From the IMG/VR virus record IMGVR_UViG_3300042402_002564, positions 124,001 through 188,000 of that record: a stretch of DNA of 64,000 bases; one strand, given 5' to 3'. Numbering within the stretch: the stretch's first letter is position 1; every line of letters begins with the position of its first letter. Below, piece by piece: positions 2,120 to 62,940 of this stretch. The translations under genes were made by a program, and so were the position numbers. Below the pieces are notes generated by a model. It did no database searches, was not told the origin of the DNA, and saw only the letters and a program-made list of their open reading frames with translations.

Positions 2120-2734
2120 ATGGCACACACCGACTCCATCATCGCCACCTATTTCCAGAGCAACACTCTGGATCGCCAGACTGGTGCCCAATGGTATAAC
2201 AACGCTTATGGCGTTTGTGTTACTTTGGGTGAAAAGTATGGTGTCCATTCTGACATCGTTGCAGGTGTTATCGCTGCACTTTCTCCTAACAACAAATGGG
2301 AGAGAAATGTAGAGGATGCTGAGGCAATGATCAAAGCATGGGCATACGAAATCTCCTATGATTCGGTTGCAGTTTGTTCCTACTCTGCCAACAAAGACAA
2401 GGCACAAACTATTCTCGATTTGCAACTTAATCGTGAGCAGATTGTTAAAGTTTTGCGTGGCAACAAAACTATTGCTTTCTTCCTTTGTATTGCTAACAAT
2501 GGTGATAGCGATTCTCCCTGCATTGATGGTCACGCTTACAACATTTGGAACGGAACTGTAACTAACCTGAAAGAGGTTCCTTCTATGTCAGACAAGACTT
2601 TCCGCATGATTCAAGATGCCTACCGTGACGCCGCTAAGTTAATCTCTGAGGTGACGGGTTTGCATTATTCAGCGGCACAAGTGCAAGCGATCACCTGGGT
2701 TACGTATCGCAGGATACACAAAAACCTAGTGTGA
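2120..2734 (+). CDS. DUF7178-like phage protein, possible HhH-glycosylase-like fold
   Basis: Motifs G..WY, AGVIAALSP...W..N, K...F..CI, CIDGHA, QVQAITW; ATG 2120 preferred over the TTG inside the promoter. Confidence 0.7.
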   Translation: MAHTDSIIATYFQSNTLDRQTGAQWYNNAYGVCVTLGEKYGVHSDIVAGVIAALSPNNKWERNVEDAEAMIKAWAYEISYDSVAVCSYSANKDKAQTILDLQLNREQIVKVLRGNKTIAFFLCIANNGDSDSPCIDGHAYNIWNGTVTNLKEVPSMSDKTFRMIQDAYRDAAKLISEVTGLHYSAAQVQAITWVTYRRIHKNLV

Positions 2735-2773
2735 CGGATTGTTACAGGGGCATCGCTGGCGATGCCCCCCATG

Positions 2774-2810
2774 CTGTAGGATACTCTCAAGCGGGGCAAA
2801 CGGACCCCGC
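2774..2810 (+). repeat. 37-bp promoter(-10)/leader stem-loop repeat, copy 1
   Basis: CTGTAGGATACTCTCAAGCGGGGCAAACGGACCCCGC; second copy at 3503-3539 with two compensatory changes. Confidence 0.9.
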
Positions 2811-2827
2811 ACAATCGGAAACCCGAA

Positions 2828-2998
2828 ATGTTCACTTCCTGGTCTGCTGCTCCTAAAGGCACTGGCATGGATCACCTGGAATTTTTCACCAGTGAAGAAC
2901 ACGCCGTAGATGTTGCCTACGATTGGAGTATTGAACTCGGTGGCAAACCCATTGTAATCTACTGTAACGAACAGGAATGGATGGAAATCACCGCCTGA
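2828..2998 (+). CDS. small hypothetical protein (56 aa)
   Basis: Hand-read ORF MFTSWSAAPKG...AVDVAYDWSIELGGKPIVIY; directly downstream of repeat copy 1. Confidence 0.7.
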   Translation: MFTSWSAAPKGTGMDHLEFFTSEEHAVDVAYDWSIELGGKPIVIYCNEQEWMEITA

Positions 2999-3049
2999 TT
3001 TGAAACACTTAGGGGGAGAAATCCCCCTCCCATTCTTCACTCTGAAACA

Positions 3050-3220
3050 ATGAAATTCGGTGCAATTGGTGTAACGATTCGCTACCAAACTCCCTACAAT
3101 TCTTGTGAATGGAGAGAGCAAACGTTTGCTACAATTGATGAGGCAAACCGCATGGTAGATTTCTATCGTTCCTGTGGTTCTCCCGCTGAGGTTGTTACTT
3201 TCCGTGAGGCACAAAAATGA
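3050..3220 (+). CDS. small hypothetical protein (56 aa)
   Basis: Hand-read ORF MKFGAIGVTIRYQTPYNSCEWREQTF...MVDFYRSCGSPAE; follows a GAAA hairpin. Confidence 0.7.
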   Translation: MKFGAIGVTIRYQTPYNSCEWREQTFATIDEANRMVDFYRSCGSPAEVVTFREAQK

Positions 3221-3327
3221 AAACATTTGCCCTCATTTTTGCGGTTATGTTTTTAATGTCTCCAGCAGTTAGAAACACTACCGCGAACACTTTACACACC
3301 GCTGCCACCATCATTTCAGCAGAATGA
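3217..3327 (+). CDS. small hydrophobic peptide (36 aa)
   Basis: MKTFALIFAVMFLMSPAVRN...; ATGA-coupled on both sides. Confidence 0.55.
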   Translation: MKTFALIFAVMFLMSPAVRNTTANTLHTAATIISAE

Positions 3328-6210: not shown

Positions 6211-6213
6211 TCG

Positions 6214-6822: not shown

Positions 6823-6868
6823 CAACCCCGTAAAAAGTTCTGATTTTATTTTAAAATCAGTAAGCACA

Positions 6869-7177: not shown

Positions 7178-7187
7178 AAAAACCCTA

Positions 7188-7194
7188 ATAAATA
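7188..7194 (+). promoter_or_regulatory. gp55-dependent late promoter
   Basis: ATAAATA intergenic, 22 nt upstream of gp25. Confidence 0.7.
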
Positions 7195-7215
7195 AATCAT
7201 AATTAAACAATAAAA

Positions 7216-25700: not shown

Positions 25701-28700
25701 TCAGATAGTGGTGATTTAACAACAGCATCTTCATATGATCAAATAAATTACTGCGACTTACCTTTAATTAATGATAGTACTAGACTTACTGATATTTTAG
25801 ATATTAGACCAAGGGTATTACCATTTAATCCAGAATCTAGTGTTTCACCATTCGAATTCTTTGGCAGAACTTTTTCAGAAGAGAATAATTCATCAAAAAA
25901 TATAATTGCATCTGATGAATCTATAACTTTAACTTATTCATTCTATTTACCAAGAATAGATAAAATTTATTTGAATAAGAATAGAAGATTCCAATTAATC
26001 AATGGTATTCCTTCAGAGAATCCATTACCACCAATTCCAATTGACGATTCATTGGAAGTTGCAACAATAAATCTTCCACCATATATTTGTAACGCTAATT
26101 CTTTAGATATATCATTAAAACAGCATAAGCGTTATAGAATGCAAGATGTTGCCCAACTTGAAGATAGAATCAAAAACTTAGAATATTACACCGCATTATC
26201 ATTATTAGAAACAAATACAGAAAATTTATTTGTACCTGATGAAAATGGATTATCTAGATTTAAATCTGGAATTTTTGTAGATAATTTTTCAACTAGAAAT
26301 TCTCAAGTAAAAGTAGGTCCAGTAAAAAATAGTATTGACCCAGCAAATCTAGAATTGAGACCTTCACCATTCACAACAGAAATTGATTTACAAATAGGTT
26401 CTAAATCACTTATTGGTATTGGTACTACCGCATCCCCAATTGCAGACACAAAATTTGTAAATGATCTCGTTGGAAATAATGTAAGAAGAACTGGACAATT
26501 AATTACACTGGATTATGATGAAGTAGTTGAAATAAAACAACCCTTTGCGACAAGAGTTGAAAACGTAGTTCCTTACTTAGTAATATCTTATAAAGGAACT
26601 ATTGAATTATTCCCATCTTCTGATATTTGGATAGACCAAGTAAGATTAGAACCACAAAGATTAGAATTAGACCTGTATACAGAGTCTAGAGAAGAATTAA
26701 TACATTCTGGTTTCGATCCACAAACAGGTTTAACTCCAGTAACATGGGATGCTTGGGAAGCTACTTGGACAGGTAGTACTACATCAGTACAAAATTCTGC
26801 AGTATTTGCTGGATCTACTTCTAATCAAATAGGAAGAACTATAACAACAACAAATACTTTCCGAAATATTCAAACAACAACAGTAACTAGAACTGGAACT
26901 GAAACTAGATCTGGTTCTCAATTGAGATTAGCTGAACAAGTTGATGTTGTTAATGAAGGAGATAGAGTTGTTAGCACTTCTGTCATTCCATTCATGAGAT
27001 CTAGGAATGTTGAATTTACTGGAAAATCATTTAGACCTTTTACTAGACTATACACATTTTTTGATGGTGTAGATGTAAATAGATTTGTTTTACCAAAATT
27101 AATTGAAATTGAAATGATCACTGGTAAATTTAATGTTGGTGAGATTATAACTGGTAGAATGTCAACTGGAACTGAAACTGAAATTAATGACTCTACTCCA
27201 TTTATAACTTTTAGAGTTGCAAAATCAAATCATAAGTATGGTCCTATTTCCAATCCTACAGATACATTTACTGTAAGTCCATATAATCAGTCATATACAA
27301 TTCCAGAAGAATATTCTAGTTCTTCAATTCTTCTTAATGTTGATACTGCATCACTATCAGATATAACTCAAGGTTTGTATAGAGGATTCATACAAACAGG
27401 TATGAGATTGAGAGGTGAAGAGGGTGAAGCAGTTATAACAAATGTAAGATTGTTTACAGACCATGTAGGGACTCTTATAGGTTCATTCTTTATTCCAAAC
27501 CCAAATATTATATCAAATCCATCTTTTGAAACTGGAATTAAATTATTTAAATTAACAAGTAGCTCTACAAATAGTTCTGTTGGTGGACTTGTTAGCACAG
27601 ATGGTGAAGAGCAATATTTTGCTCAAGGTACAATTAATAATCAACAAGAAACTATTAGAACTACTAGAAAACCAAGATTTGATGAAGAGACAGTAAGTGA
27701 ATCTAGAGCGGCAGTAGATGTACAATCAACTACTGCAGTAAGTACATTTACAACTGTTAGTACTATTACATTACCGCCACCACCACCACCAGATCCACCA
27801 TGGGGAGGAGACCCACTAGGACAATCATTCTTTATTACTAATAATACTGGAGTTTTTGTAACTGCTGTTGATGTTTTCTTTAATACTAAAGACGAAACAC
27901 TTCCAGTAACAGTTCAGCTTAGACCTGTTGTTAATGGTGTTCCATCTACAGAAGTATATCCATTTGGTGAAGTTGTTGTTGAATCTAAAGATGTTGTTAC
28001 TTCTTCAGACGGTTCATTACCAACTAAAGTATTATTCCCTTCCCCAATTTATTTAAATCCAAATTCAGAAAATGCTATTGTATTATTAGCACAATCATAT
28101 GAATACACTGTTTGGATTTCTAGAATGGGTGAAATTGACATTGGTACTTTATCTCAACCAGAATCTAGACAGGTTCTAGTTTCTGCACAACCAATGCTTG
28201 GTTCTTTATTCAAGTCACAAAATGGTTCCACTTGGACACCTAGCCAATATGAAGATTTAAAATTCAATCTATATTCGGCAAGATTTAAGGGTAGTAATGG
28301 ATCTATAACATTCTATAATCCAGAATTATCAGAAGGTAACGCACAAATTGCAACTCTATTAAAAGATTCTTTAGAATTTAATGCTAAAAAAATTATTGTA
28401 ACTTTAAATGATACTGTAGATTTATCTGGAGTAGATTTGGGTAATACTATTATTCAAATGAATAATAATGCTTTTGCAAATTATGTTGGTGCTGGTGGTT
28501 CTGCTTCTGGAAATTTAAATATTGTTAATCCTGGTATTGGATATACACCATCTAATGGTTCATCGTTTACATTCACTAATATTCCTCTGGTATCTTCTAC
28601 TGGAAATGGTAAAAATGCGACTGCTAATATTACTATTGGAACTGTTAATGGATTAAATGGTGTTGCTATTGCTGCAACAATATCCAATGGAGGTTCTGGT

Positions 28701-30296
28701 TATCAAATTGGCGATGTTCTTACAGTTGAACAAATCGGTTCTGAGTCATTAGGAAGAAATTTACAGTTATCATTATCAAATATTTCTGGAACTAATGAAC
28801 TAATTTTAGATCAAGTTCAAGGTGAATTTAAAATTAATGGGGCAATGCCTATACAATATGTTGATAGTGTTGCTGGAATTACTACAATTTTAACTACTTC
28901 TGGTCCAAATGCAGTAATTACCGATTTAGAACTTTATTCCCTTGAGACAGATGGTTTACATATTAAAGTAAATCATAAAAATCATGGTATGCATTCTGAA
29001 ATTAATAAAGTTCAGATTAATCATGTTGATACTGATATAACACCTACCATATTGACTGCAGACTATACAAATTCTGACACTGGAAGTATCAGTATTGCAA
29101 GTACTACATCTTTCACAACGTTTGAAAATGTTTCGGTTGCTTCCACAAATCCAGGATATGTTTTAATAGATAATGAAATAATTTCATATACTGGAGTTGG
29201 TGATGGACAATTAATAGGTATTACTAGACAAATAGATCAAACTAGATCTTACAACTATCCTACTGGTTCAATAGTTAAAAAATATGAATTGAATGGAGTT
29301 TCATTAAGAAGAATAAACAAAACTCATGATTTACAAGATTCCCTAGTACAAAGACCAATAGGATTAGATTACTATTATATTAAACTTGACACATCATCAA
29401 ATGGAACTGATAGAAATAGTGGAAATGGATTTGAAAAACTATACATTAATGAATCCAAATCTTCTGGTGGCAATTCAGTAAAAGCATCACAAAATATACA
29501 ATATGAAATAGCAAGACCAATAGTTCAAACATTAGTTTTATCTGAAACTAACATTCGTTCATCAATTAAAACTGTAACTGGAACTAGTATTGATGGTGAT
29601 GAAGTATCATTTATTGAATCTGAAATACTTCCATTAAATATAACAGAAAATACATTCTTCGATACTCCAAGAATTGTTGCATCTAAGGTTAATGAAACTG
29701 ATAAATTGTCCAGTTTACCTGGAAATAAATCATTAAGCGTTACATTTAACCTATCTACTTTAAATAATACAGTATCTCCTGTTATTGATTTAGATAGAGT
29801 TGGATTAATTTTAACAACTAATAGAGTAAATAATGTTATTGACGATTACGTAAATGATAGTAGAACATCTTCAATATACGAAGATCCAACAGCTTTCATT
29901 TACACTAATAAGATGATTTCTTTAGAAAATTCTGCATCATCTATTAAAATTTTATTATCTGCTTATGTAAATGTTTTTAGTGAAGTTAGAGCATTTTACA
30001 CCATATCTAATAAATTAGAAACAAATCCAATTTATTATCCATTCCCAGGATATAATAACTTAGATGTAAATGGAAAAGTGATTGATATCTTTAATAGTGA
30101 TGGACTACCTAATAAGTTAGTACCAAAAACAGATATTCTTGGTTTTGGTAATAATGAAGTTACCTTTAGAGATTATGAGTTCTTTATTGATAATTTACCA
30201 GAATTTAGATACTTTGGCATTAAACTAATTGGAACATCTACAAATCAGGCACATCCACCAAGAATAAAAGATTTACGTGTAATTGCATTGGCTTAA
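22788..30296 (+). CDS. large virion structural protein, VrlC/DUF4815-like (2502 aa)
   Basis: NLNVSPYFDDF...VLFKPG.PVQARELT.LQS, APGADRL, RYRMQD...LE.RI.NLEYYT.LSLLE, DPLGQSF, GSLFKSQN..TW. Confidence 0.85.
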   Translation: MPKETNLNVSPYFDDFDPEKQYYQVLFKPGLPVQARELTSLQSVLQNQIEQLGNHLFKEGSVVIPGQINYNNSLFAVEVESEYLGIPFASYASELLGKVIRGENSNVSAKVVLIIGPEFSERGYHTIYINYLSSGTDERQAFANGETLLLEENLVLNNLNFQSGQGFAITAPTDCTSTGSALFLSEGIYFLRGSFVKVDEQVLILEPHANNPSYRVGFEILEEVITSSQDQSLNDNAKGFNNYAAPGADRLKITASLTKKPLDSEKNENFIEFLIVRNGTVSHINETPEYNVIVDELARRTYDQSGDFYVKPFSIVSRESLNDSKGNNGIFNSNQLTYGNLTPNSSLGVYKISPGKAFIKGYEVNVRGVTFLDFEKTRTTKTLENQKINFITGPTLTLNRVFGAPTIGFTTDNTISLRDQRIGVAHSIFAGKEIGVARVYDYALESGSYSSFDQNLNEWDIALYDIQTYTEITLNEPLTLTAPTFIEGKSSGATAYLRYNTTSGIITAYNGQGKFIYGEKLIFNGIEGNRVSTAITAYSIDDVKSLYSLVGSGITFNADVKPQLKLSYGQVRISPKSGAAPGICTVTSNDLVFLNAVKPGDLVSFTNPAINNAQLKTFAKIVSVTDDFNIIISGITTVSNICDGGLPTSQITPVDFSILKSKFQSSSDNTLYTPLPKKWISNVNLTNSNLTIRKEFDVTITANTTNTIQADEDEFFLPFDEERYVLVNSSGYIEPLTPDKFRYTNGNREIRIFGVNSVGSARLIATLEKINIKNKVKNISRVNSIIVNKSNLAQSGIGSTTLNDGLSYGNYGYGLRVQDKELCLLVPDVTKVYGIFESSDTTDPKLPRISLFNLNGPTGRVDDLIIGEEFIGRESGAVGIFVNKVDSLNLEFIYLNELRLKLNETIEFKETSIRGVVNGFVEGDSNITNRYLLDSGQKETICDYSKLIRITNNKEPKRKLRIIFEASQYSSSDSGDLTTASSYDQINYCDLPLINDSTRLTDILDIRPRVLPFNPESSVSPFEFFGRTFSEENNSSKNIIASDESITLTYSFYLPRIDKIYLNKNRRFQLINGIPSENPLPPIPIDDSLEVATINLPPYICNANSLDISLKQHKRYRMQDVAQLEDRIKNLEYYTALSLLETNTENLFVPDENGLSRFKSGIFVDNFSTRNSQVKVGPVKNSIDPANLELRPSPFTTEIDLQIGSKSLIGIGTTASPIADTKFVNDLVGNNVRRTGQLITLDYDEVVEIKQPFATRVENVVPYLVISYKGTIELFPSSDIWIDQVRLEPQRLELDLYTESREELIHSGFDPQTGLTPVTWDAWEATWTGSTTSVQNSAVFAGSTSNQIGRTITTTNTFRNIQTTTVTRTGTETRSGSQLRLAEQVDVVNEGDRVVSTSVIPFMRSRNVEFTGKSFRPFTRLYTFFDGVDVNRFVLPKLIEIEMITGKFNVGEIITGRMSTGTETEINDSTPFITFRVAKSNHKYGPISNPTDTFTVSPYNQSYTIPEEYSSSSILLNVDTASLSDITQGLYRGFIQTGMRLRGEEGEAVITNVRLFTDHVGTLIGSFFIPNPNIISNPSFETGIKLFKLTSSSTNSSVGGLVSTDGEEQYFAQGTINNQQETIRTTRKPRFDEETVSESRAAVDVQSTTAVSTFTTVSTITLPPPPPPDPPWGGDPLGQSFFITNNTGVFVTAVDVFFNTKDETLPVTVQLRPVVNGVPSTEVYPFGEVVVESKDVVTSSDGSLPTKVLFPSPIYLNPNSENAIVLLAQSYEYTVWISRMGEIDIGTLSQPESRQVLVSAQPMLGSLFKSQNGSTWTPSQYEDLKFNLYSARFKGSNGSITFYNPELSEGNAQIATLLKDSLEFNAKKIIVTLNDTVDLSGVDLGNTIIQMNNNAFANYVGAGGSASGNLNIVNPGIGYTPSNGSSFTFTNIPLVSSTGNGKNATANITIGTVNGLNGVAIAATISNGGSGYQIGDVLTVEQIGSESLGRNLQLSLSNISGTNELILDQVQGEFKINGAMPIQYVDSVAGITTILTTSGPNAVITDLELYSLETDGLHIKVNHKNHGMHSEINKVQINHVDTDITPTILTADYTNSDTGSISIASTTSFTTFENVSVASTNPGYVLIDNEIISYTGVGDGQLIGITRQIDQTRSYNYPTGSIVKKYELNGVSLRRINKTHDLQDSLVQRPIGLDYYYIKLDTSSNGTDRNSGNGFEKLYINESKSSGGNSVKASQNIQYEIARPIVQTLVLSETNIRSSIKTVTGTSIDGDEVSFIESEILPLNITENTFFDTPRIVASKVNETDKLSSLPGNKSLSVTFNLSTLNNTVSPVIDLDRVGLILTTNRVNNVIDDYVNDSRTSSIYEDPTAFIYTNKMISLENSASSIKILLSAYVNVFSEVRAFYTISNKLETNPIYYPFPGYNNLDVNGKVIDIFNSDGLPNKLVPKTDILGFGNNEVTFRDYEFFIDNLPEFRYFGIKLIGTSTNQAHPPRIKDLRVIALA

Positions 30297-41327: not shown

Positions 41328-42995
41328 ATGGCAAAATTATTTGGATTTTCTATAGAGAATAAAGAATCTCTTTCACCTTCTGTAGTATCCCCCGTTCCTC
41401 AAAATAATGAGGACGGGGTTGATCATTATCTAACAAGTGGTTTTTTTGGATCTTATGTAGATATAGAGGGTGTTTATAGAACCGAATATGATTTAATTAA
41501 AAGATACAGAGAAATGTCACTTCACCCAGAAGTAGACAGTGCTATTGAAGATATCGTTAATGAAGCTATTGTTAGTGACACAAACGATACTCCAGTACAA
41601 ATTGAATTATCTAATTTAAATGCTAGTGATGGATTAAAAAAGAAGATAAGAGAAGAATTTAAAACAATTTTAGATTTATTAGATTTTGATAAAAAATCTC
41701 ATGAAATTTATAGGAATTGGTACATTGATGGAAGACTTTATTATCATAAAGTAATCGATTTAAAAAATCCACAAAAGGGTATTCAAGAATTAAGATATGT
41801 TGACGCATTAAAAATGCGTTATGTTAGACAATCTATTTCTAAAAAGAAGAATAATGGTGGAGTTAGAATAAAAAATTCTAACGACGAAAATCCAATGGAT
41901 TATGATTTTCCACAAATTGAAGAATACTTCATCTATAATCCTACTGCCCAATCTCCAATTGGGTCTATGAATGGAAGAAATTCTAGTCAGGCAAATTCTG
42001 GAATCAAAATTGCGAGAGATGCGATAACTTATTGTACTTCTGGATTAGTAGATAGAAATAAAGGAACTTGTCTGTCATACTTACATAAAGCAATTAAGTC
42101 TCTCAATCAACTCCGCATGATTGAGGATAGTCTTGTTATTTACAGATTGTCTCGTGCTCCAGAGCGTCGTATCTTCTATATTGATGTAGGTAATCTTCCT
42201 AAAATTAAGGCAGAGCAATATCTTCGTGATGTTATGATGCGTTATCGCAATAAATTAGTTTACGATGCCTCTACAGGTGAAATTAGAGATGATAAGAAGT
42301 TTATGAGTATGCTTGAGGACTTCTGGTTACCTCGTAGAGAAGGTGGTAGAGGTACAGAGATTACAACTCTTCCTGGTGGTCAGAATCTTGGAGAAATTAC
42401 AGATATCAAATATTTCCAGAGTAAATTATACAAATCATTGAACGTTCCTCCATCAAGAATGGAAGGAGAAGGTGGATTTAATCTTGGTAGATCTTCAGAA
42501 ATTTTGAGAGATGAACTCAAATTTACCAAATTTGTTGGTAGATTAAGGAAGCGTTTTTCAAACATGTTTAATGACATGTTAAAGACCCAATTAATATTAA
42601 AAAATATCGTAACTCCAGAAGATTGGGAGCAAATGAGTGAGCATATTCAATATGACTTCCTTTATGATAATCACTTCTCTGAACTAAAAGAAGCAGAATT
42701 GATGACCGAAAGGTTAAATATTGCTGCTACTGCAGAACCTTATATCGGCAAATACTACTCTCAAGATTATGTAAGACGTAAGATTTTACGTCAAACTGAT
42801 GAAGAGATTATTGAGCAAGATCAATTAATCAAAAAAGAAATTAAAGCAGGCATTATTCCAGATCCAAATGCACCAATAGACCCAGCAACTGGTATGCCAA
42901 TGCCTTCTGATGCAAACCAAGATAATATTAATGGTGCATCAGGAAAAGTTCCTACAGAACCAGGGATAGATGGTTCAAGTACAGAAGTTAAGTAA
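41328..42995 (+). CDS. gp20: portal vertex protein gp20
   Basis: RAPERRIFYIDVGNLP, EDFWLPRREGGRGTEITTLPGG. Confidence 0.98.
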   Translation: MAKLFGFSIENKESLSPSVVSPVPQNNEDGVDHYLTSGFFGSYVDIEGVYRTEYDLIKRYREMSLHPEVDSAIEDIVNEAIVSDTNDTPVQIELSNLNASDGLKKKIREEFKTILDLLDFDKKSHEIYRNWYIDGRLYYHKVIDLKNPQKGIQELRYVDALKMRYVRQSISKKKNNGGVRIKNSNDENPMDYDFPQIEEYFIYNPTAQSPIGSMNGRNSSQANSGIKIARDAITYCTSGLVDRNKGTCLSYLHKAIKSLNQLRMIEDSLVIYRLSRAPERRIFYIDVGNLPKIKAEQYLRDVMMRYRNKLVYDASTGEIRDDKKFMSMLEDFWLPRREGGRGTEITTLPGGQNLGEITDIKYFQSKLYKSLNVPPSRMEGEGGFNLGRSSEILRDELKFTKFVGRLRKRFSNMFNDMLKTQLILKNIVTPEDWEQMSEHIQYDFLYDNHFSELKEAELMTERLNIAATAEPYIGKYYSQDYVRRKILRQTDEEIIEQDQLIKKEIKAGIIPDPNAPIDPATGMPMPSDANQDNINGASGKVPTEPGIDGSSTEVK

Positions 42996-44781
42996 CTTTA
43001 ATAAATTTATTTTTTAGAAGTCCTTTTCTTCTCAGTATAAAAAGATTATTTTTATCATATCCTATAAAGTCATTATCGATTTTATAGGATATTTTATTTT
43101 TCTCCCAAGTTTCTATATTATATTTTGAGTTTAAAGTTAATGGATATTTTTGATTTTCATTAAAAATAAATTTTTTCTGAATATCAATAATTTCTGAGTC
43201 AATTTGTACAATATTTGAGCAATATAACTCAATAAATTCAAATAGTTTTGATTTATTTTTAAATAAGAATTCAAAACTACTAGCATGTAAAGAATGACCA
43301 GTTTTGGCACCCTGTGTTATCTTCCCAGTCTTAATATAAGTAGAGACAATATTATATATTTCTTGATAATGAACTCCAATGAATCCATCATCATTTTTTA
43401 TACAGTCAAATAAATTATCATAAAATTTTCTATAACTTATATTTAAAATATTAAAGCAATATTTCGATAGCACTTGAGTATATCCCGCTATATGTAATTG
43501 AACAATCAACCATCCGTACATATAACATTCAATTAATTCATCTGTGGTTAAAGTATCGGTTTTATTAATTAATTCTATACTTTCTTTTACTTCTGAGTAA
43601 TCTTTTTCATTAGTGAATGAAACGTAATCCTCTGCTTTGATAGTTTCAATACCATATATTTTTCTAGATAATTCACTGTTCAATTCACTGTTACCAAAAA
43701 CTTGACAAAACCAAACATCAATAGATTCATGTTGCCCAAATTCTAATATTTTAGAGAATCCTTCCTTCCAAGAATCTATAGTTTCGTTTGGTAATCCTAA
43801 AATTAACTCGGTATAAGTTTTTACATCATGCTCTTTACTTTTTTCAATATGAGATGTAATGTTATTAATACTCATATTTTTTCTTTTAATTGCTTTAAGT
43901 GTTGGTTCATTCATACTTTGAACACTTATAGTTACACCTCTACTAATATCTCCAAGTATTTTTGCTATTTCAAAAACTACTTCTGTAGAATTTTTAGAAT
44001 ATTGCAAATTAACAGATTCTAATTTGCTATTATCAGCAACTTCTCTTATTAATTTTGCTATTTCCAAATCTCTTTCTTTATACATTCCAAAATTTGCATC
44101 TGCACAAAATATAAATGCAACATTATTATTTTTAATCCATTCAAGATCATTTTTTACACGATCTAGATTAAACATTTTAACTTTACTATAGGTTAATCCA
44201 CCCCAATCACAAAAAGTACATGAATGGGGGCACCCTCGATTAGTTTCAATAGTAGAAGCCCAAAGAGTATTTGGATTGTCTTTTACAATTTGATCAAATA
44301 CTTTAGATTCATATGGACTTGGAAAGTCTAATTGCTCTATTCTACTTTTTTGATATATTTTTTCTATTGTTTTATTTTGAACAATACTAGTTAATAAATC
44401 TAAGTAACTTTCTTCACCTTCACCAATTATTACACAATCTATAAATTCATTATCAAGAATTTTCAAAGTTGCTTGTGGTCCACCAAATTGAATAATACAG
44501 TCTGGAAATTTTTCTTTTATTAGTTTTGATAAAAATAGACAATATTGCTCATTCCAAACGTAACAACTAAAACTGCACACTGTTGGATTGTCTAATCTTT
44601 CCAGTATTTTATTTGGATGCTCTCTTTTAAAGATAATATCTTTTAATACAAAATTATTTTTTACTTCATCAAATTGATTACAATAACTCCATAAACAACC
44701 AACACTGTAAGGAAGCCAATATGTGTCTTCATTTCTAATTTCTACAGAATATTGCGGTTGAAATAAATATATATTTTTCAT
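42988..44781 (-). CDS. cobalamin-binding-domain radical SAM enzyme (paralog 2)
   Basis: N-terminal B12-binding-like region (FSCYVWN, GGPQ, GEGE); ETNRGCPHSCTFCDW CxxxCxxC; DANFG; TELILGLP.ET. Confidence 0.9.
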   Translation of the reverse strand: MKNIYLFQPQYSVEIRNEDTYWLPYSVGCLWSYCNQFDEVKNNFVLKDIIFKREHPNKILERLDNPTVCSFSCYVWNEQYCLFLSKLIKEKFPDCIIQFGGPQATLKILDNEFIDCVIIGEGEESYLDLLTSIVQNKTIEKIYQKSRIEQLDFPSPYESKVFDQIVKDNPNTLWASTIETNRGCPHSCTFCDWGGLTYSKVKMFNLDRVKNDLEWIKNNNVAFIFCADANFGMYKERDLEIAKLIREVADNSKLESVNLQYSKNSTEVVFEIAKILGDISRGVTISVQSMNEPTLKAIKRKNMSINNITSHIEKSKEHDVKTYTELILGLPNETIDSWKEGFSKILEFGQHESIDVWFCQVFGNSELNSELSRKIYGIETIKAEDYVSFTNEKDYSEVKESIELINKTDTLTTDELIECYMYGWLIVQLHIAGYTQVLSKYCFNILNISYRKFYDNLFDCIKNDDGFIGVHYQEIYNIVSTYIKTGKITQGAKTGHSLHASSFEFLFKNKSKLFEFIELYCSNIVQIDSEIIDIQKKFIFNENQKYPLTLNSKYNIETWEKNKISYKIDNDFIGYDKNNLFILRRKGLLKNKFIKVT

Positions 44782-46586
44782 TCATCAATTTTAGATATAG
44801 TATTTTTTAGTAATCCCTTTCTTCTTAAAACCCAAAAATCATTTCGTATTGACTCATCTCTTTTATTTGAAACCATTAAACTTGTTGGTTTATCTTCCCA
44901 TGTTGTTGTATCAACAGAAGAAGAAATAGTAATAGGATAATCTACCTCAGAGTCATAAACAAAGTTTTTTTGAAGATCCCAAAATTCATTAGTTATACCA
45001 CCAAATTTTACCAGAGATTTATCAATTAAGGCAAATACTTCATTCCTATTATTCATAAAAAATGAAAAATCATTAGGAGAATTAAATTCTAATGAATGTC
45101 CACTTTTATTATCTGGTAAAATTCCCTCTGTTAAGTAATTTTTTACATCGAACTTTAATTTTTGAAAATATTCACCAATTATTCCGTTGTCAGTTTGAAC
45201 CTTTTCAAATATTTCATCATAAAACATCCTATAAGTTATATTTTTATTGTAAAAAAGATATTTTGCTATTAGTTGAGCATATCCATTTATATGGAATTGT
45301 ATTACTGTCCAAGCATACAAATAACTTTCAATTAATTCCAAAGTTGCCATTGAATTAGTTTTATTAACTATCTCAACAATTTCTTTGAATCCATGATATT
45401 CCTTAGGATTAGTGAATGAAATATAGTCATACGCCTTTACTGTTTCAATTCCGTGCATCTTTCTAGATAATTCACTTCCCAATTCACTATTACCAAATAA
45501 TTGGCAGAACCAAACATCAATCGATTCGTGTTGACCACACTCCAAAACTTTAGATAATCCGTCTTTCCAAGTTTCTAAAGTTTCCTCGGGTAATGGCAAA
45601 ATCAGTTCAGTGTATGTTTTAACTCCATATTCTTGACTCATTCTCATATGATTAGTCAAATCATTTATATGAAGATTCTTTCTCTTAATAGCCTTCAAAG
45701 TTGGTTGATTCATACTTTGAACGCTAATTGTTATTCCCCTAAGACAATGTTCTTCAAGTATTTTTGCAATTTTAAATACTGCTTCTGTTGAATTCTTAGC
45801 AAATTGTAAAACAACGTCACCAACATTGGTTTCTTTTAATTTGTCTCTGATTATCTCTGCTATAAGTATATCTCGCTCCTTATACATTCCAAAATTAGCA
45901 TCAGCAACAAATAAGTATCCAATATTATTATTTTTTATCCAAGTAATATCATCTTCAACTCTCTTTATGTCGAAGTGGTCTACTTTACTCATAGTAGTTC
46001 CACCCCAATCACAAAAAGTGCATCTATGAGGACAACCTCTATTTGTTTCTATAGTTGCAGCCCAAATTACATCGGGATTTTCTTCAATTATTTTACTAAA
46101 GACATTAGATTGATATGGACTTGGATAATCTAATGTAGATAATCTAGTTCTCTCGTAATATTTTTTTATTTCTTTGTTTTCTATAATAGAATTAAGTATG
46201 TCTAGAAAATTTTCTTCACCCTCAGAAATTATTACAGTATCAATAAAATCATTTTCCTCTTGCATTTTTTTAGATGCTTGAGGTCCACCAAATTCGATAA
46301 TGCAATTTGGAAATTTTTCTTTTACGAGTTTAGCTATTCCTAGACAATACTGTTCATTCCAAATATAACAACTAAATCCACATAAAACAGGATTATCCAA
46401 TCTTTCTAATATTTTATCTGGATGTTCTCTTTTAAAAATTATATCCTTTAAAATAAAATTATTTTTTACTTCATCAAATTGATTACAATAACTCCAAATA
46501 CATCCAACACTATATGGTATCCAATAATTTTCTTGTTTTCTAACTTCTACAGAATATTGTGGTTGAAATAAATATATGTTTTTCAT
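44778..46586 (-). CDS. cobalamin-binding-domain radical SAM enzyme (paralog 1)
   Basis: Same architecture with RGCPHRCTFCDW; start set at 46586 because MKNIYLFQPQYSVE aligns with the paralog start. Confidence 0.9.
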   Translation of the reverse strand: MKNIYLFQPQYSVEVRKQENYWIPYSVGCIWSYCNQFDEVKNNFILKDIIFKREHPDKILERLDNPVLCGFSCYIWNEQYCLGIAKLVKEKFPNCIIEFGGPQASKKMQEENDFIDTVIISEGEENFLDILNSIIENKEIKKYYERTRLSTLDYPSPYQSNVFSKIIEENPDVIWAATIETNRGCPHRCTFCDWGGTTMSKVDHFDIKRVEDDITWIKNNNIGYLFVADANFGMYKERDILIAEIIRDKLKETNVGDVVLQFAKNSTEAVFKIAKILEEHCLRGITISVQSMNQPTLKAIKRKNLHINDLTNHMRMSQEYGVKTYTELILPLPEETLETWKDGLSKVLECGQHESIDVWFCQLFGNSELGSELSRKMHGIETVKAYDYISFTNPKEYHGFKEIVEIVNKTNSMATLELIESYLYAWTVIQFHINGYAQLIAKYLFYNKNITYRMFYDEIFEKVQTDNGIIGEYFQKLKFDVKNYLTEGILPDNKSGHSLEFNSPNDFSFFMNNRNEVFALIDKSLVKFGGITNEFWDLQKNFVYDSEVDYPITISSSVDTTTWEDKPTSLMVSNKRDESIRNDFWVLRRKGLLKNTISKIDE

Positions 46587-46609
46587 TTCATTGAACTTTA
46601 TGTATGTTG

Positions 46610-46624
46610 TATTTATCATAAATA
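46610..46624. promoter_or_regulatory. back-to-back divergent late promoters
   Basis: TATTTAT-C-ATAAATA: ATAAATA on both strands, each about 24 nt from the ATG it faces (46586 on -, 46648 on +). Confidence 0.75.
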
Positions 46625-46647: not shown

Positions 46648-46806
46648 ATGGACGAACTTTTAGATATGATTATCTCTGACGAATCACCTGCACAAGTCAG
46701 TGATAAAATTAAAGAACTTCTTTTCGCAAAATCTGCGGATAAAATTGAAGCATTGAGACCAGCAGCAGGAAATTCATTATTTGGGAATCAAGAAGAGGTA
46801 GGATGA
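46648..46806 (+). CDS. small prohead-core-like protein (gp67 position, 52 aa)
   Basis: Hand-read ORF MDELLDMIISDESPAQVSDKIKELLFAKSADKIE..RP...SLF; position downstream of gp20. Confidence 0.75.
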   Translation: MDELLDMIISDESPAQVSDKIKELLFAKSADKIEALRPAAGNSLFGNQEEVG

Positions 46807-46807
46807 T

Positions 46808-47128
46808 ATGAAATCATTCAAGCAATTTATATCTGAATCAGTTAATATTGCTGGTGATTTTACTGGAAATCTTTATATTAATTCCGAAACAGAACAACCT
46901 CAGCAAGTAGGAGAAAACTATGTTGCTGATGTTATGTGGCAAGGAAACTTGTATAGATTGGAATTAGTAACCAAATCTGGATTGCCCTCAAAACAGGATT
47001 TAGGTGAGCAACTTCAAAGACAATATCCTGGAGCAATTGTTCATCAGATTTATCCAGCAGAAGAAAAGAACTTTAACATTAAAAACGTACAAAGATATCA
47101 CCCCTCAAAATTAGAATGGATTGATTGA
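46808..47128 (+). CDS. probable internal head protein with a capsid-targeting-like N-terminus
   Basis: MKSFKQFISE resembles the T4 IPII/IPIII capsid targeting sequence MKTYQEFIAE. Confidence 0.7.
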   Translation: MKSFKQFISESVNIAGDFTGNLYINSETEQPQQVGENYVADVMWQGNLYRLELVTKSGLPSKQDLGEQLQRQYPGAIVHQIYPAEEKNFNIKNVQRYHPSKLEWID

Positions 47129-47130
47129 TA

Positions 47131-49050
47131 ATGGCTCAGTGGAATATACAAAATCAAGATTATCTAAATCAAGAAAGATCTTTATTTGAAGTTAATAATA
47201 TTGCAACTAAAGATGGTCAACCAGTTAGTGTTGATAATCCATTTCCAGTATCTCTTGGAAGTTCTAGTATTACAATTAATGGTGATATTAGTATTCCTGG
47301 AATAGTAACTGTTACAAGTACACCAGAAAATCCAATTCATTCCCATATAGTTGAAGTTGGAACCAGTGGTGCATTAACAACACCATATCTTCCTGTTGGT
47401 GTTGGAACAGTAAATATAAATCTTTCATATCTTCCAGTTGGCATTTCCTCATTACTGAATACAGTATCAATCTCAAATACAAGTTTTTATATTCTAAATC
47501 CTGTTACTTCTGTGACGGTAGGTGGAACAGTATCAATTGCTAATACAGTATCAATCTCAAATACAAGTTTTTATATTCTAAATCCCGTTACTTCTGTAAC
47601 CGTAGGAGGAACTGTATCAATTGCCAATACAGTATCAATCTCAAATACAAGTTTTTATGTAACCAATCCAGTCACAACAGTCGCAGTATCAGGTATTGGT
47701 TCTACTGTTACAGTTCAGGGAACAGTAGGAATTGGAACAACTGGGCAAGTATCACTCAATCTCAATAGTGCTCCTGTAAGTTCTAGTAATCCCCTACCAG
47801 TTACGGGAACAGTATCAATTTCCACATCATCAGCAGCAGCATCTATTACATTTCCCCCAATAGCAACTGATGCATTTGGTCGTTTAAGAACTTCAACTCC
47901 ACTTACACTTTTTGATAGTTCCCACAGATACAAGGACAATAATCTTTGGAGTGGTTTAGTTGTAGGAACTGGTTCAACAGTTGGATTTGTAACAGCACAA
48001 GGTTTAGTCAATATTAGTATAGGAACTACTGCTGGATGTTCTGCGATTAGGGAAACCACAAAAGTATTCTCTTATCAACCAGGAAAATCATTACAAGTGA
48101 TGAATACTTTTGTAATGAACCCACCAAAAGCAAATCTTCGTCAAAGAGTAGGATACTTTGGTGCAGATAATGGAATGTATCTGGAACTTGATGGAAGCAC
48201 TTTATATTTTGCGGAAAGAAGTTTATCTACTGGAATAACAACACAAATTTCGCAAAATAACTGGAATATTGATACAATGCTTGGTGCAGGACATCTCAAT
48301 CCATCTGGTGTTACATTAGATATTTCCAAAGCACAAATTTTGTGGATGGATATTGAATGGTTAGGACTTGGAACAGTTAGATTGGGTTTTGTAGTCGATG
48401 GGAAGTTTATTCACTGCCATTCATTCCATCACGCAAACTTAATCACTTCAACTTATATCACAACAGCATCACTACCATTAAGATATGAGATTGTAAATAC
48501 TGGAATTACAACCAGTGCAAGCACACTTAAACAAGTTTGTTCTACTGTAATTTCCGAAGGTGGTTATGAACTTCGTGGATTACAACAGGCAATAGGAACA
48601 CCAATCACGGCACCAAGAACTCTTACAACTGCTGGGACTTTTTATCCTATAGTTAGTTTGAGATTGAAAACTACTGCTTTGGATGCAATTATCATTATGA
48701 CTGCACTTTCTCTTATGGGAATTGGTAATGGAGTTAATTATAATTGGCAGGTAAGAGCATCTGGAACTACAACAGCTGGAAGTTGGGTGAGTGCTGGTGT
48801 GGATAGTAGTGTTGAATATAATCTTACTGGAACTTCTTATGCTGGTGGAAGAATACTTGCGAGTGGATTTTTAAACTCATCAAATCAAGGTTCTCCATCA
48901 ATTGATATTCTAAAAGAAGCACTATTCAAGTTTCAGTTAGAAAGAAATAGTTTGACTTCTACACCTTTTGAACTCACACTTCTTGCTACTGCTGCAACTA
49001 ATGGTGAGCAGATTTTTGCTTCAATGGACTGGGAAGAAATTAGTAGGTAA
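47131..49050 (+). CDS. probable virion structural/fibre protein with a repeat stalk and a globular C-terminal domain
   Basis: V/S/T/G-rich N-terminal half with tandem repeats; DAFGRLR.S.P.TLFDS, YQPGKS, EWLG.G.VR.GF C-terminal domain. Confidence 0.7.
   Translation: MAQWNIQNQDYLNQERSLFEVNNIATKDGQPVSVDNPFPVSLGSSSITINGDISIPGIVTVTSTPENPIHSHIVEVGTSGALTTPYLPVGVGTVNINLSYLPVGISSLLNTVSISNTSFYILNPVTSVTVGGTVSIANTVSISNTSFYILNPVTSVTVGGTVSIANTVSISNTSFYVTNPVTTVAVSGIGSTVTVQGTVGIGTTGQVSLNLNSAPVSSSNPLPVTGTVSISTSSAAASITFPPIATDAFGRLRTSTPLTLFDSSHRYKDNNLWSGLVVGTGSTVGFVTAQGLVNISIGTTAGCSAIRETTKVFSYQPGKSLQVMNTFVMNPPKANLRQRVGYFGADNGMYLELDGSTLYFAERSLSTGITTQISQNNWNIDTMLGAGHLNPSGVTLDISKAQILWMDIEWLGLGTVRLGFVVDGKFIHCHSFHHANLITSTYITTASLPLRYEIVNTGITTSASTLKQVCSTVISEGGYELRGLQQAIGTPITAPRTLTTAGTFYPIVSLRLKTTALDAIIIMTALSLMGIGNGVNYNWQVRASGTTTAGSWVSAGVDSSVEYNLTGTSYAGGRILASGFLNSSNQGSPSIDILKEALFKFQLERNSLTSTPFELTLLATAATNGEQIFASMDWEEISR
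47458..47676 (+). repeat. 84-bp in-frame tandem repeat (~2.6 copies)
   Basis: Units start at 47458, 47542 and 47626 and encode NTVSISNTSFYILNPVTSVTVGGTVSIA. Confidence 0.9.
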
Positions 49051-55763: not shown

Positions 55764-55792
55764 TTGTAGATATTTCATATGGATGGTATAAT
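55764..55792 (+). promoter_or_regulatory. sigma70-type promoter for the gp55 operon
   Basis: TTGTAG-N17-TATAAT with extended TGn. Confidence 0.7.
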
Positions 55793-55820
55793 TGATATAC
55801 ATATTAAATTAGGTATTCTT

Positions 55821-56318
55821 ATGATAACTACAAATGCCATGACAAAGAGGAAGAGATCGGTTCATTACGTCAATAACAAAGATTTTTTAGCAGCATTAAT
55901 TGAGTATAAAAAAGCAATTGCTGATGCTGAAGGTAGAGGTGACCCAAAACCACAAATTACGAATTATCTTGGTGAATGCTTTTTAAAAATTGCAACTCAT
56001 TTATCATTTAAACCAAATTTTGTCAATTACATCTTTAAGGATGATATGATTAGTGATGGTATTGAAAACTGTGTTCAGTACATCCATAATTTCAATCCAG
56101 AAAAATCTCAAAACCCTTTTGCATACTTCACTCAGATTATTCACTACGCATTTCTGAGACGCATTCAGAAAGAAAAGAAGCAACTGGAAATTAAGAATAA
56201 GATTCTTGAAAGAACTGGATATGATGAGGTCTTTTTTGACGACAACCATATTGACGGAATGAATTATTCTGACTATAATAGCATCAAGGATAGTATTCAC
56301 TCTAAAACAAGGTACTGA
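55821..56318 (+). CDS. gp55: late-transcription sigma factor gp55
   Basis: HYVNNK.F, KIA.HLS.KPNF, NPFAYFTQI..YAFLRRI.KEK; the track ATG at 55779 lies inside the promoter, so 55821 or 55839 is preferred. Confidence 0.95.
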   Translation: MITTNAMTKRKRSVHYVNNKDFLAALIEYKKAIADAEGRGDPKPQITNYLGECFLKIATHLSFKPNFVNYIFKDDMISDGIENCVQYIHNFNPEKSQNPFAYFTQIIHYAFLRRIQKEKKQLEIKNKILERTGYDEVFFDDNHIDGMNYSDYNSIKDSIHSKTRY

Positions 56319-61757: not shown

Positions 61758-61821
61758 CCACTGAGAACCTTTCAGAACCAATTTTACCCTTATAATTATT
61801 GAGTTGAACAAACACATCGTT

Positions 61822-62940
61822 ATGACACTTTCTTCTGATTACATCCGCACCTCTCTTCAAAATCTTTATGGCAACAACATCACCAGTGCCGATGTTCGTG
61901 CTTGGTGTAGTATGAATGATACTAATTACCAAACTGTTACTAATAAAATTTATCAATATAAAACTGGTCATGGTAAATGGAATCTTGAAGTGACTCAACA
62001 AAAAGTGGAAGAAATCGAACGTACTTATCAAGCACCCGCAGTGGTTCCTCCTGTAGAGCAAAATCTCATTCCTGATAAAGATGATACCTTCGTCAAGTTT
62101 GGTAATTTTAACGATATTAAACGCATTATTCAGTCCAATCTCTTTTATCCTACGTTCATTACGGGTCTTTCGGGTAATGGTAAAACGTTCAGTGTTGAGC
62201 AAGCGTGTGCTCAACTTAAGCGTGAATTGATTCGTGTAAACATTACAATTGAAACTGATGAAGACGACCTTATCGGTGGATTCCGCCTTGTTGATGGAAA
62301 TACCGCTTGGCATAACGGTCCCGTTATTGAGGCACTGGAACGAGGAGCAATCCTTCTCCTTGATGAAATCGACCTTGCATCTAACAAAATCCTGTGTCTT
62401 CAATCCATCCTTGAAGGCAAAGGTGTTTTCCTGAAAAAGATTGGTCGCTGGGTAAAACCCGCTGCTGGGTTTAACGTGATTGCCACCGCAAACACCAAGG
62501 GTAAAGGTTCTGATGATGGACGTTTCATCGGCACCAACGTGCTCAACGAAGCATTCCTGGAGCGTTTCCCTGTGACCTTCGAGCAGTCCTATCCCGCCCC
62601 AGCAACTGAGCAGAAAATCCTTGAGGGGGTCGCTCTGGACCTTGGAGTAGAGGATCGTGACTTCTGCAAGCGTCTGGTGGACTGGGGTGATATCATCCGC
62701 AAGACCTTCTACGATGGTGGTATTGAAGAAATCATTAGCACCCGTCGTCTGGTTCATATCATCCGTGCTTACAGCATCTTCCAGGATAAAGCAAAGGCAA
62801 TCCAAGTTTGTGTCAATCGTTTTGATGACGAAACTAAGCAAGCATTCCTTGAACTTTATGACAAGGTTGATGCTGACTTCCAGATGCCTAAAGAATATGA
62901 GCATGTAACTTACGACCTTGACCAACAAACTCAATCCTGA
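61822..62940 (+). CDS. cobS: CobS/MoxR-like AAA+ ATPase
   Basis: GLSGNGKT, LLLDEID, ATANTKG.G, NEAFLERF, ISTRRL; TATAAT at 61791-61796 upstream. Confidence 0.88.
   Translation: MTLSSDYIRTSLQNLYGNNITSADVRAWCSMNDTNYQTVTNKIYQYKTGHGKWNLEVTQQKVEEIERTYQAPAVVPPVEQNLIPDKDDTFVKFGNFNDIKRIIQSNLFYPTFITGLSGNGKTFSVEQACAQLKRELIRVNITIETDEDDLIGGFRLVDGNTAWHNGPVIEALERGAILLLDEIDLASNKILCLQSILEGKGVFLKKIGRWVKPAAGFNVIATANTKGKGSDDGRFIGTNVLNEAFLERFPVTFEQSYPAPATEQKILEGVALDLGVEDRDFCKRLVDWGDIIRKTFYDGGIEEIISTRRLVHIIRAYSIFQDKAKAIQVCVNRFDDETKQAFLELYDKVDADFQMPKEYEHVTYDLDQQTQS

Follow-up and report, generated by a model that had tools for sequence, protein, structure and literature searches.

A conserved pair of predicted cobalamin-dependent radical SAM methylases in the head-gene cluster of uncultured T4-like cyanophages

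Why would a T4-like cyanophage carry, antisense within its head-gene cluster, two radical SAM genes behind what looks like a late promoter? The genes were pointed out by an earlier note on a stretch of 64,000 nucleotides (positions 124,001 to 188,000 of IMG/VR record IMGVR_UViG_3300042402_002564; hereafter the window), which described two ATGA-coupled paralogs of around 600 residues, each with a B12-binding-like domain and an intact CxxxCxxC motif. The note proposed that both enzymes are expressed during morphogenesis, act sequentially or as a heterodimer with host (pseudo)cobalamin, and modify virion proteins, virion glycans or DNA being packaged. We found that what the note described is indeed present in the sequence. 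Its interpretation received partial support, in the sense that the enzyme type and a late-type control were backed by comparative data, whereas the range of possible substrates could be narrowed, on neighbourhood evidence only, towards a sugar or glycan.

Gene structure and family of the pair

The features of the locus are collected in Table 1. The two proteins, denoted A (upstream) and B (downstream), are 58% identical over around 600 amino acids. Three details of the earlier description had to be adjusted. The ORF of A extends to an ATG at 46619 (613 aa), but homologs start at the ATG at 46586 and the ATAAATA box lies between these two ATGs, so that the ATG at 46586 is the probable start. 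The gene following the cassette had been taken as the gene at the gp67 position, but the first gene there is a previously unlisted ORF of 52 aa, which is followed by the 106-aa gene, and no homology to T4 gp67 was shown. Finally, the statement that the pair comprises the only substantial minus-strand genes is nearly right: a minus-strand ORF of 166 aa is also called as a gene in public calls, although it has no phage homolog. No Rfam family and no tRNA were found in the window.

Table 1. Features of the cassette and its surroundings (positions refer to the window)
Position	Strand	Feature	Remarks
2726..3226	-	166-aa ORF
41328..42995	+	Portal gene (gp20), left edge of the insertion	phrog_213, E 5e-229; 3' end overlaps the 3' end of B by 8 nt (42988-42995)
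42988..44781	-	Paralog B (597 aa), TokK-type cobalamin-dependent radical SAM enzyme	CPHSCTFC at nt 44232-44209; backbone-tracking copy; 'dn' clade, support 100/97
43057..43092	+	Hairpin (15-bp stem) followed by a T-run	62 nt past the portal stop, inside the coding 3' end of B; may be the terminator of the portal transcript; weak, as two such sites were found against 1.0 expected
44778..44781	-	ATGA stop/start overlap coupling A and B
44778..46586	-	Paralog A (602 aa from the conserved Met)	CPHRCTFC at nt 46034-46011; copy exchanged by recombination in relatives; 'up' clade, support 100/98
46610..46624	.	Back-to-back late-promoter-like boxes, TATTTATCATAAATA on the plus strand	Minus-strand ATAAATA (46616-46610) faces the cassette; plus-strand ATAAATA (46618-46624) faces the 52-aa gene
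46648..46806	+	52-aa conserved head-module gene, divergent from the cassette; right edge of the insertion	64% identical to S-SM2 SSM2_115, which lies right after gp20 in a phage without the cassette
55779..56318	+	gp55-like late sigma factor, likely trans-acting reader of the ATAAATA boxes	Sigma70_r2 E 6.5e-5, just below the cut-off; between the UvsW/Sm-like genes and the gp47/gp46-like genes

A search with the Pfam models for the two domains had been put forward in advance as a test of the assignment. The Radical_SAM model (PF04055) scored 55.9 and 52.5 bits against a cut-off of 29.5, which together with the cluster motif places both proteins in the radical SAM superfamily. The B12-binding model (PF02310) was detected but remained below its gathering score (21.2 and 25.6 bits against 32.1), and the presence of this domain is supported instead by the fold. 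An AF2 model of A (pLDDT 86) was compared by Foldseek with solved structures and matched TokK (PDB 7kdy) over all three domains, including the Cbl domain, with a TMq of 0.86, and CysS with a TMq of 0.72. The alignments covered 626-681 columns of TokK (TMq 0.84-0.86) and thus included the large C-terminal domain that closes the substrate channel. Binding of cobalamin or pseudocobalamin was not assayed. TokK was also the best solved relative in sequence searches, for both A (E 2e-63) and B (E 9e-68).

Two tryptophans, one beneath the corrin (TokK Trp76) and one in the active site after the cluster motif (TokK Trp215), are reported only in TokK, ThnK and CysS (bioRxiv 10.1101/2021.07.10.451909). 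Their counterparts, W76 (SCYxWN) and W194 (CDWG), are invariant in all 97 viral sequences, as are the three cluster cysteines. In contrast, Arg280 of TokK, which anchors the carbapenam carboxylate, is not conserved: the aligned position is V258 in A and Ile/Leu/Val across the family. The pair therefore does not share the hallmark of the TokK/ThnK orthologs, which only says that the substrate differs. Among the NCBIfam models KedN5 (NF033712) was the best hit (E 1e-48), but the scores (165.8 and 159.1 bits) are far below the family cut-off of 700, so that the proteins are not members of that family.

Distribution, evolution and promoter context

How often homologs lie in phage structural modules had likewise been named beforehand as a check. 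The cassette was found at the same site, between portal and prohead protease, in about 50 uncultured T4-like marine loci, and the empty site is seen in S-SM2, which supports that the pair is an insertion into the head module. More than 4,000 protein hits were obtained, at least 585 IMG/VR stretches encode relatives and one variant is indexed in 88 blocks of the collection. Nevertheless, neither protein has a PHROG family and a tblastn search with A against 50,697 deposited phage records gave a single weak hit, in a gut phage; the cassette is absent from these genomes, so cultured models have missed it. No characterised phage counterpart turned up, as the note had supposed, and literature searches found only generic mentions of radical SAM genes in marine phages. 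Of the closest cellular loci, one (L009) was uninformative and another (L010) looks like a misbinned phage contig. A pelagimyophage origin was rejected, as the major capsid protein is 83.5% identical to that of Synechococcus phage S-B05.

The A and B copies form reciprocally monophyletic sister clades that stem from one old duplication, and dN/dS values of 0.04-0.18 indicate that function has been kept. The retention of both copies, together with natural fusions of two such modules elsewhere, fits the proposal of sequential action or a heterodimer, although this was not tested directly. In relatives, A is replaced together with a gene for a partner protein, X298, as one block of 2.5 kb between phages that are otherwise 96-100% identical.

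With respect to transcription, the minus-strand box GATAAATA lies 24 nt upstream of the start codon of A and holds one of only two minus-strand ATAAATA sites in 64 kb, against about 25 expected from base composition, which makes it more than a chance AT-rich word. The element is conserved as TATTTA(N1-3)ATAAATA in 27 of 37 distinct related loci while the flanks diverge. Together with the gp55-like gene in the window, the sequence features thus correspond to those of a T4-type late transcription unit, although no transcript data were at hand and no cultured phage carries the cassette. Sigma-70-type promoters were not enriched in the region (38 against 31.6 +/- 5.1).

The probable substrate

The connection to sugars rests on gene neighbourhoods. 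X298, the operon partner in relatives, is GT25-like by fold (COLGALT1, Mimivirus R655, PBCV-1 A64R) and by a profile search that bridged to PF01755, whereas Pfam, NCBIfam and PDB-profile searches gave nothing for X298, for a further protein, Y220, or for the small neighbours. Y220 has an HxD...H...R pattern, but an hhalign comparison with two 2OG oxygenases was not significant and such an identity is no more than a guess; homology of X298 or Y220 to the proteins designated f4 or f3 was rejected. In a second, PA5oct-like phage lineage the homolog, 44-49% identical, lies inside a cluster with a dTDP-glucose-4,6-dehydratase-like SDR, a DegT/PseC-like fragment, a GT1-like protein and a 'sporadic carbohydrate cluster' 2OG oxygenase. 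Of 80 cellular loci, 45 have sugar genes near the homolog, with DegT in 22 and sugar SDRs in 37 within 10 kb, and a fused double enzyme sits among GT2 and DegT genes. The genome to which the window belongs has homologs of f2 and f3, including a half-DegT, plus six GT25-like paralogs about 28 kb from the pair.

The association is strong in relatives, but in the window no glycosyltransferase is adjacent to the cassette, and the background rate of sugar genes near random bacterial genes was estimated rather than measured, so that the neighbourhoods do not decide whether the enzymes are sugar C-methyltransferases. In addition, GT25-like genes are common in cyanomyoviruses that lack the pair, making this co-occurrence not specific. 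The late promoter TATAAATA at the head of the glycosyltransferase island is present in the phage of the window but absent in its closest relative, and is not used as strong evidence.

Based on the above, we tentatively favor the following explanation, which we consider more likely than any single alternative but not more likely than not. The genes encode non-redundant C-methyltransferases of the TokK/CysS type. In that enzyme type one SAM methylates cob(I)alamin, and a second SAM is cleaved at the [4Fe-4S] cluster to a 5'-deoxyadenosyl radical, which abstracts a hydrogen from an unactivated carbon, after which the substrate radical takes the methyl group from methylcobalamin. In this view, the translationally coupled operon would be driven by a gp55-type late promoter that sits back-to-back with the late promoter of the head genes. 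The substrate is probably a nucleotide-sugar or a sugar already on a glycoconjugate, made by the phage's own GT25-like transferases and half-DegT aminotransferase-like protein. Each paralog would add a different or a successive C-methyl, where the conserved copy B would do the common step and copy A, exchanged together with a glycosyltransferase, would set a variable one. Late timing and head-module position point to a virion-associated glycan as the destination. The gene structure, the family, the conservation of genes and promoter box and the gene neighbourhoods follow directly from the analysis, whereas the methylase chemistry, the use of the host's (pseudo)cobalamin, the sugar substrate and the virion destination were inferred. 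No transcript, cofactor, substrate or product data exist, the characterised relatives (TokK, CysS, KedN5) act on pantetheinylated or aromatic small molecules and not on sugars, and nothing here shows that cyanophage virions are glycosylated. A more far-reaching and rather unlikely reading, which the data nevertheless allow, is that ocean cyanomyoviruses decorate their particles late in infection with a glycan carrying C-alkyl-branched sugars, and that swapping of the glycosyltransferase-plus-methylase module between near-clonal phages creates capsid 'glycotypes'. This would be the first cobalamin-dependent step in virion morphogenesis and would tie phage production to the pseudocobalamin supply in the host.

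The other explanations appear unlikely, each to a different extent. The same sugar context could reflect remodelling of host LPS or other cell-surface glycans, for example to block superinfection, and published views of glycosyltransferase and radical SAM cassettes in pelagimyophages (PMC7029224) and in S-SCSM2R (PMC12801897) favor cell-surface modification, while the module swapping also fits serotype-like surface variation. However, a late-type promoter and a site inside the head module fit poorly with a function that should act early, and the pair sits apart from the glycosyltransferase island. Promoter and position would agree with C-methylation of side chains of prohead or capsid proteins during assembly, as Mmp10 and QCMT do on methyl-coenzyme M reductase, and class-B radical SAM protein methylases exist (PMC9401015, PMC13469106). 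This is slightly less likely again, given that the closest relatives are small-molecule methylases, that the RiPP and protein-methylase models score far lower (E about 1e-10) than KedN5, and that the neighbourhoods in other lineages hold sugar genes and not peptide genes. The idea that the 52-aa neighbour is a RiPP-like, dedicated precursor was rejected, because this ORF is conserved in the cassette-less S-SM2.

Methylation of a base or a base-linked sugar on replicated DNA before packaging is doubtful as well. The late promoter next to the portal gene, the GTP cyclohydrolase I that borders the cluster in the second lineage and the glycosylated DNA of T4-like phages would be in line with it, and late expression would parallel the mom gene of phage Mu. 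Yet no DNA-binding or base-flipping domain is present, the whole protein matching TokK, no hydroxymethylase or DpdA-like partner was seen in the stretches examined, and the GT25 fold is known for LOS and protein acceptors. The least likely option is alkylation of a pantetheine- or carrier-bound metabolite, yielding a phage-directed secondary metabolite or a modified cofactor. It is suggested by the family and structure matches and by the fact that the S-SCSM2R authors called a neighbouring gene set 'antibiotic synthesis', but no carrier protein, NRPS, PKS or beta-lactam genes occur in any examined context and the substrate-anchoring Arg280 is absent.

Significance and comparison with known systems

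Class-B radical SAM methylases are known from antibiotic, cofactor and lipid pathways of cells, but none has been characterised in a phage and none is known as a fixed, late-promoter-driven part of a head-morphogenesis module; the cassette itself has not been studied. If the sugar reading is right, it reveals a new kind of viral glycan tailoring, gives a reason for the unexplained GT25/DegT islands of large cyanomyoviruses and shows a recombining glycosyltransferase-plus-methylase module that behaves like a serotype locus. The cassette would also make phage fitness depend on a trace vitamin (pseudocobalamin) and on the Fe-S and SAM supply in the host, a dependence that is testable in the sea. 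For enzymology, the family offers hundreds of natural TokK-type variants, including paired and fused forms, which presumably use different substrates.

Compared with T4-type late promoters (TATAAATA read by gp55), the element shares the ATAAATA core at a short distance from the start codon, many plus-strand copies of which lie just upstream of structural genes while the motif is depleted elsewhere. It differs in that the first base is G and not T, and in the back-to-back arrangement of the two boxes as a bidirectional element, for which no transcript mapping exists. The viral glycan machineries of PBCV-1 (A64R), Mimivirus (R655 cluster) and the GT25/DegT islands of cyanomyoviruses (S-SCSM2R ORF301-310) likewise comprise virus-encoded glycosyltransferases and sugar-tailoring genes, and the half-DegT in the genome of the window is 58% identical to that of S-SCSM2R. 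The target of the cyanophage islands is not known, and none of these systems has a B12-type radical SAM pair; S-SCSM2R has a short non-B12 radical SAM 'maturase' instead.

GenK/GenD1-type enzymes of aminoglycoside pathways are the precedent for cobalamin-dependent radical SAM C-methylation of sugar carbons, the chemistry proposed here. They belong to a different class-B subgroup, with GenK being listed in the TokK paper among the enzymes that lack the two signature tryptophans; a direct comparison was not run. CysS, the iterative methylase of cystobactamid (PDB 9n1b-d; E 1e-38), and the KedN5 family belong to the same subgroup of Cbl-dependent radical SAM methylases as the phage pair, which lacks a natural-product cluster context. 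TokK and ThnK, the iterative C6 methylases of carbapenems (PDB 7kdx, 7kdy), share with the pair the architecture of an N-terminal Cbl Rossmann domain, a radical SAM barrel and a C-terminal domain, at an identity of only about 22-24% in the structural alignment. Unlike these, the genes described here are phage-borne, paired and preceded by a late-type promoter, and lie in no beta-lactam cluster.

Setting and composition of the cassette

The stretch under study covers roughly positions 124,001-188,000 of the 246.5-kb contig Ga0453663_0000004 (IMGVR_UViG_3300042402_002564), which derives from an uncultured T4-like cyanomyovirus. Its genes run almost entirely on the plus strand and follow the usual order, with baseplate genes (gp25-, gp6- and gp8-like) accompanied by two giant structural ORFs, then the neck, gp15, terminase, sheath, tube and portal genes, the protease, scaffold and major capsid protein, and finally gp3-like, UvsY, UvsW, gp55-like and gp47/46-like genes and a CobS-like AAA+ gene. 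The latter is the usual cyanophage 'cobS' and shares a name link to cobalamin with the B12-type enzymes discussed here, although a functional link was not tested. The major capsid protein is 83.5% identical to that of Synechococcus phage S-B05 and the likely host is therefore a marine picocyanobacterium. The first 5 kb of the window deviates in composition (GC 0.40-0.58 in a phage of about 30% GC) and is partly devoid of publicly called genes; no tRNA and no Rfam family were found there and we have no explanation for it.

The earlier note described two coupled minus-strand radical SAM paralogs between the portal and the head genes, and this observation was confirmed with three small corrections. 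The two ORFs, denoted A (upstream) and B (downstream), overlap as ATGA, are 58% identical and each carries an intact CxxxCxxC motif. The search with domain profiles that had been put forward as a check yielded a Radical_SAM domain above the Pfam cut-off and a sub-threshold B12-binding match in each protein. Homologs and some public gene calls start A at an internal Met. The GC content of the genes is 26-28%, against 32% for the rest of the phage, and they are therefore long-resident and not a recent import. The coordinates of the various features are listed below.

Positions of the features in the window and in related loci
Sequence	Position	Strand	Feature
Window	1-5000		GC-rich segment, peak at 3301-3900; about 4 kb upstream of the DUF7178 gene, and also 3226-4929, without any gene in public calls
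Window	2069-2734		DUF7178 gene
Window	9542-21169	+	Giant structural ORF, 3,875 aa, with a YHYH domain (baseplate/fibre region)
Window	22788-30296	+	Giant structural ORF, 2,502 aa, with DUF4815 (baseplate/fibre region)
Window	42988-44781	-	Paralog B, 597 aa; overlaps the portal gene tail-to-tail by 8 nt
Window	43057-43092	+	Perfect 15-bp-stem hairpin with a T-run, 62 nt after the portal stop and inside the coding end of B
Window	44778-46619	-	Paralog A; 602 aa from the conserved Met encoded at 46586
Window	46616-46610	-	ATAAATA, 24 nt before the conserved start of A
Window	46618-46624	+	ATAAATA, facing the 52-aa head gene
Window	46648-46806		52-aa head gene
Window	46808-49050		106-aa gene (phrog_1742) and 641-aa 'virion structural protein' (phrog_1645)
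Window	61804-62940	+	CobS-like AAA+ protein (AAA_5 plus CbbQ_C)
L172 (same contig as the window)	12481-20487 (about 198.6-206.6 kb of the contig)		Operon-like island right after the gp41 helicase
L093 against L124	7130-9609 against 5336-7816		Replaced 2.5-kb block, GT25-like gene plus paralog A
L007	11724-12386	-	Y220, conserved gene of 213-222 aa in this locus and its homologs
L168	1-13501		Metagenomic contig with five B12-type radical SAM genes

Family, distribution and history of the two copies

The best NCBIfam match was the KedN5 family of methylcobalamin-dependent radical SAM C-methyltransferases (E 1e-48), although the score is far below the cut-off of that family. The best solved relative of both proteins is TokK, followed by CysS. 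An AlphaFold model of A (pLDDT 86) superposes on TokK over all three domains with a TMq of 0.86 and on CysS with 0.72, while every other radical SAM structure scores 0.5 or less. The TokK structure paper reports two Trp residues, Trp76 under the corrin and Trp215 beside the substrate, and both align to invariant Trp residues in all 97 viral sequences that we collected, as do the three cluster cysteines. The carboxylate-binding Arg280 of TokK is not conserved, so the substrate differs. We therefore place both proteins in the TokK/CysS-type subgroup, of which all characterized members are C-methylases and several are iterative.

A word-indexed search recovered more than 4,000 homologs, the top 120 of which are all at least 50% identical and come from marine metagenomes, and IMG/VR holds at least 585 encoding stretches. 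How often the homologs lie in phage structural modules had been raised beforehand as a test, and in about 50 T4-like loci the genes were found at exactly this site, between portal and prohead protease and on the opposite strand. The cassette-less state is seen in S-SM2, where the order is gp20, a 66-aa gene, an 89-aa gene and gp21, and where the 66-aa gene is the homolog of the 52-aa ORF of the window. Between the 52-aa and the 89-aa gene the window carries two additional genes that S-SM2 and many cassette-bearing relatives (for example the locus L003) lack at this position, which looks like a second insertion in the same interval. Many relatives in turn carry a further conserved gene (Y220) on the structural strand between the portal and the cassette, which is absent from the window; it has an HxD...H...R pattern that suggests a cupin or 2OG oxygenase, but no significant match was found anywhere. 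None of 50,697 deposited phage genomes has a close homolog of the cassette genes and there is no PHROG for them. Cellular relatives are at most 39% identical and taxonomically scattered. One 12.8-kb contig binned as Candidatus Puniceispirillum (L010) looks phage-derived; it carries Mtd_N, a MoxR/VWA pair, TauD, an Asp/Arg hydroxylase and a SPASM radical SAM gene around the B12 radical SAM gene, and is probably misbinned.

In a maximum-likelihood tree the upstream and downstream copies form two reciprocally monophyletic sister clades (100/98 and 100/97), and A and B of the window each pair with the corresponding copy in the locus L001. This indicates a single duplication before this phage clade diversified, with both copies kept since. 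Pairwise dN/dS is 0.04-0.18 for both copies. Elsewhere, two such modules are fused into single proteins of about 1,280 aa, in which each half has its own cluster motif. These facts argue for two distinct, coupled steps and against redundancy.

Expression signal and genomic neighborhood

The late-promoter core is strongly depleted in the window: ATAAATA occurs 16 times on the plus and 2 times on the minus strand, against about 34 and 25 expected, and the full TATAAATA occurs 2 times against 11.7 +/- 3.4 in shuffled sequences, which suggests selection against stray late promoters. Many of the plus-strand copies lie just upstream of structural genes. One of the two minus-strand copies precedes A and sits back-to-back with a plus-strand copy. 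The composite TATTTA(N1-3)ATAAATA is retained upstream of the first cassette gene in 27 of 37 distinct related loci, although the flanks differ, and a gp55-like gene is present in the window. Late co-expression with the head genes, as had been inferred in the earlier note, is therefore well supported by sequence but not shown by transcripts, and we consider late control fairly likely.

Four independent neighborhood observations point to sugars as the substrate. In most T4-like relatives the operon begins with a protein of ~300 aa (X298), whose model matches GT25/GT-A glycosyltransferases (human collagen galactosyltransferase COLGALT1, Mimivirus R655, bacterial beta-1,4-galactosyltransferases and PBCV-1 A64R) and whose more distant homologs carry PF01755. 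The cassette of the window itself has no adjacent sugar gene, however, and GT25 genes are common in cyanomyoviruses without the pair. In a second viral lineage, distantly related to PA5oct-like jumbo phages, a single homolog that is 44-49% identical lies inside a co-directional cluster with a GT1-like protein, a DegT/PseC-like fragment (f3), a small partner protein (f2), a dTDP-glucose-4,6-dehydratase-like SDR and a fusion of the two 'sporadic carbohydrate cluster' families TIGR04324 and TIGR04323. Among 80 cellular loci, 22 have a DegT-type aminotransferase, 37 a sugar SDR and 45 at least one such gene within 10 kb, although the background rate of sugar genes near random bacterial genes was not measured. 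The fused double enzyme sits among GT2, DegT and further B12 radical SAM genes; on the metagenomic contig L168, five B12-type radical SAM genes, one of them a 1,283-aa fusion of two complete modules, are interleaved with two GT2 genes and a DegT. Finally, the genome of the window has an operon-like island about 28 kb from the pair, with a 359-aa protein, homologs of f2 and f3 (the latter a half-DegT), a sulfotransferase-like gene and six tandem GT25-like paralogs of the X298 family. A full TATAAATA lies 31 nt upstream of this island, but not in the related locus L171. The half-DegT is rare in cultured phages and its best match is in S-SCSM2R, where it lies in an island of glycosyltransferases and 2OG oxygenases next to a different radical SAM gene.

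The phage loci L093 and L124 are 96-100% identical in every structural protein and 98% identical in copy B, yet only 48% identical in X298 and 56% in copy A. The replacement is clean, with DNA breakpoints at the start of X298 and about 190 nt before the end of A. The converse also occurs, as nearly identical A copies were found on diverged backbones (L122 against L119). The GT25-like gene and the upstream paralog thus behave as an exchangeable specificity module, while B tracks the backbone, and this is the pattern expected of a surface or recognition determinant under diversifying selection.

Functional interpretation and relation to described systems

On this basis we tentatively favor late-expressed sugar C-methylation by two coupled TokK-type enzymes, possibly on a virion-associated glycan. 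The separate elements of this reading are not equally secure. The reality of the cassette and the assignment to the family are directly supported by the analysis and held with high confidence, whereas the methylase chemistry is inferred but probable, a sugar as substrate is only somewhat more likely than not, and the virion as destination is doubtful. There are no expression or biochemical data and cobalamin use rests on fold and signature residues; marine picocyanobacteria make pseudocobalamin, but whether these enzymes accept it is unknown. The interpretation in the earlier note, that two such enzymes are expressed during morphogenesis, is supported in part. Alternative explanations that we consider next to the favored one are the remodeling of host-envelope glycans, direct protein methylation, DNA modification and the formation of a small-molecule product.

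In the literature we found only generic notes of radical SAM cassettes in marine phages, namely for pelagimyophages (PMC7029224), East Australian Current viromes (PMC7150976) and S-SCSM2R (PMC12801897), and no description of this pair. The enzyme chemistry involved is known, whereas the abundant, phage-specific arrangement in which it occurs here is undescribed.
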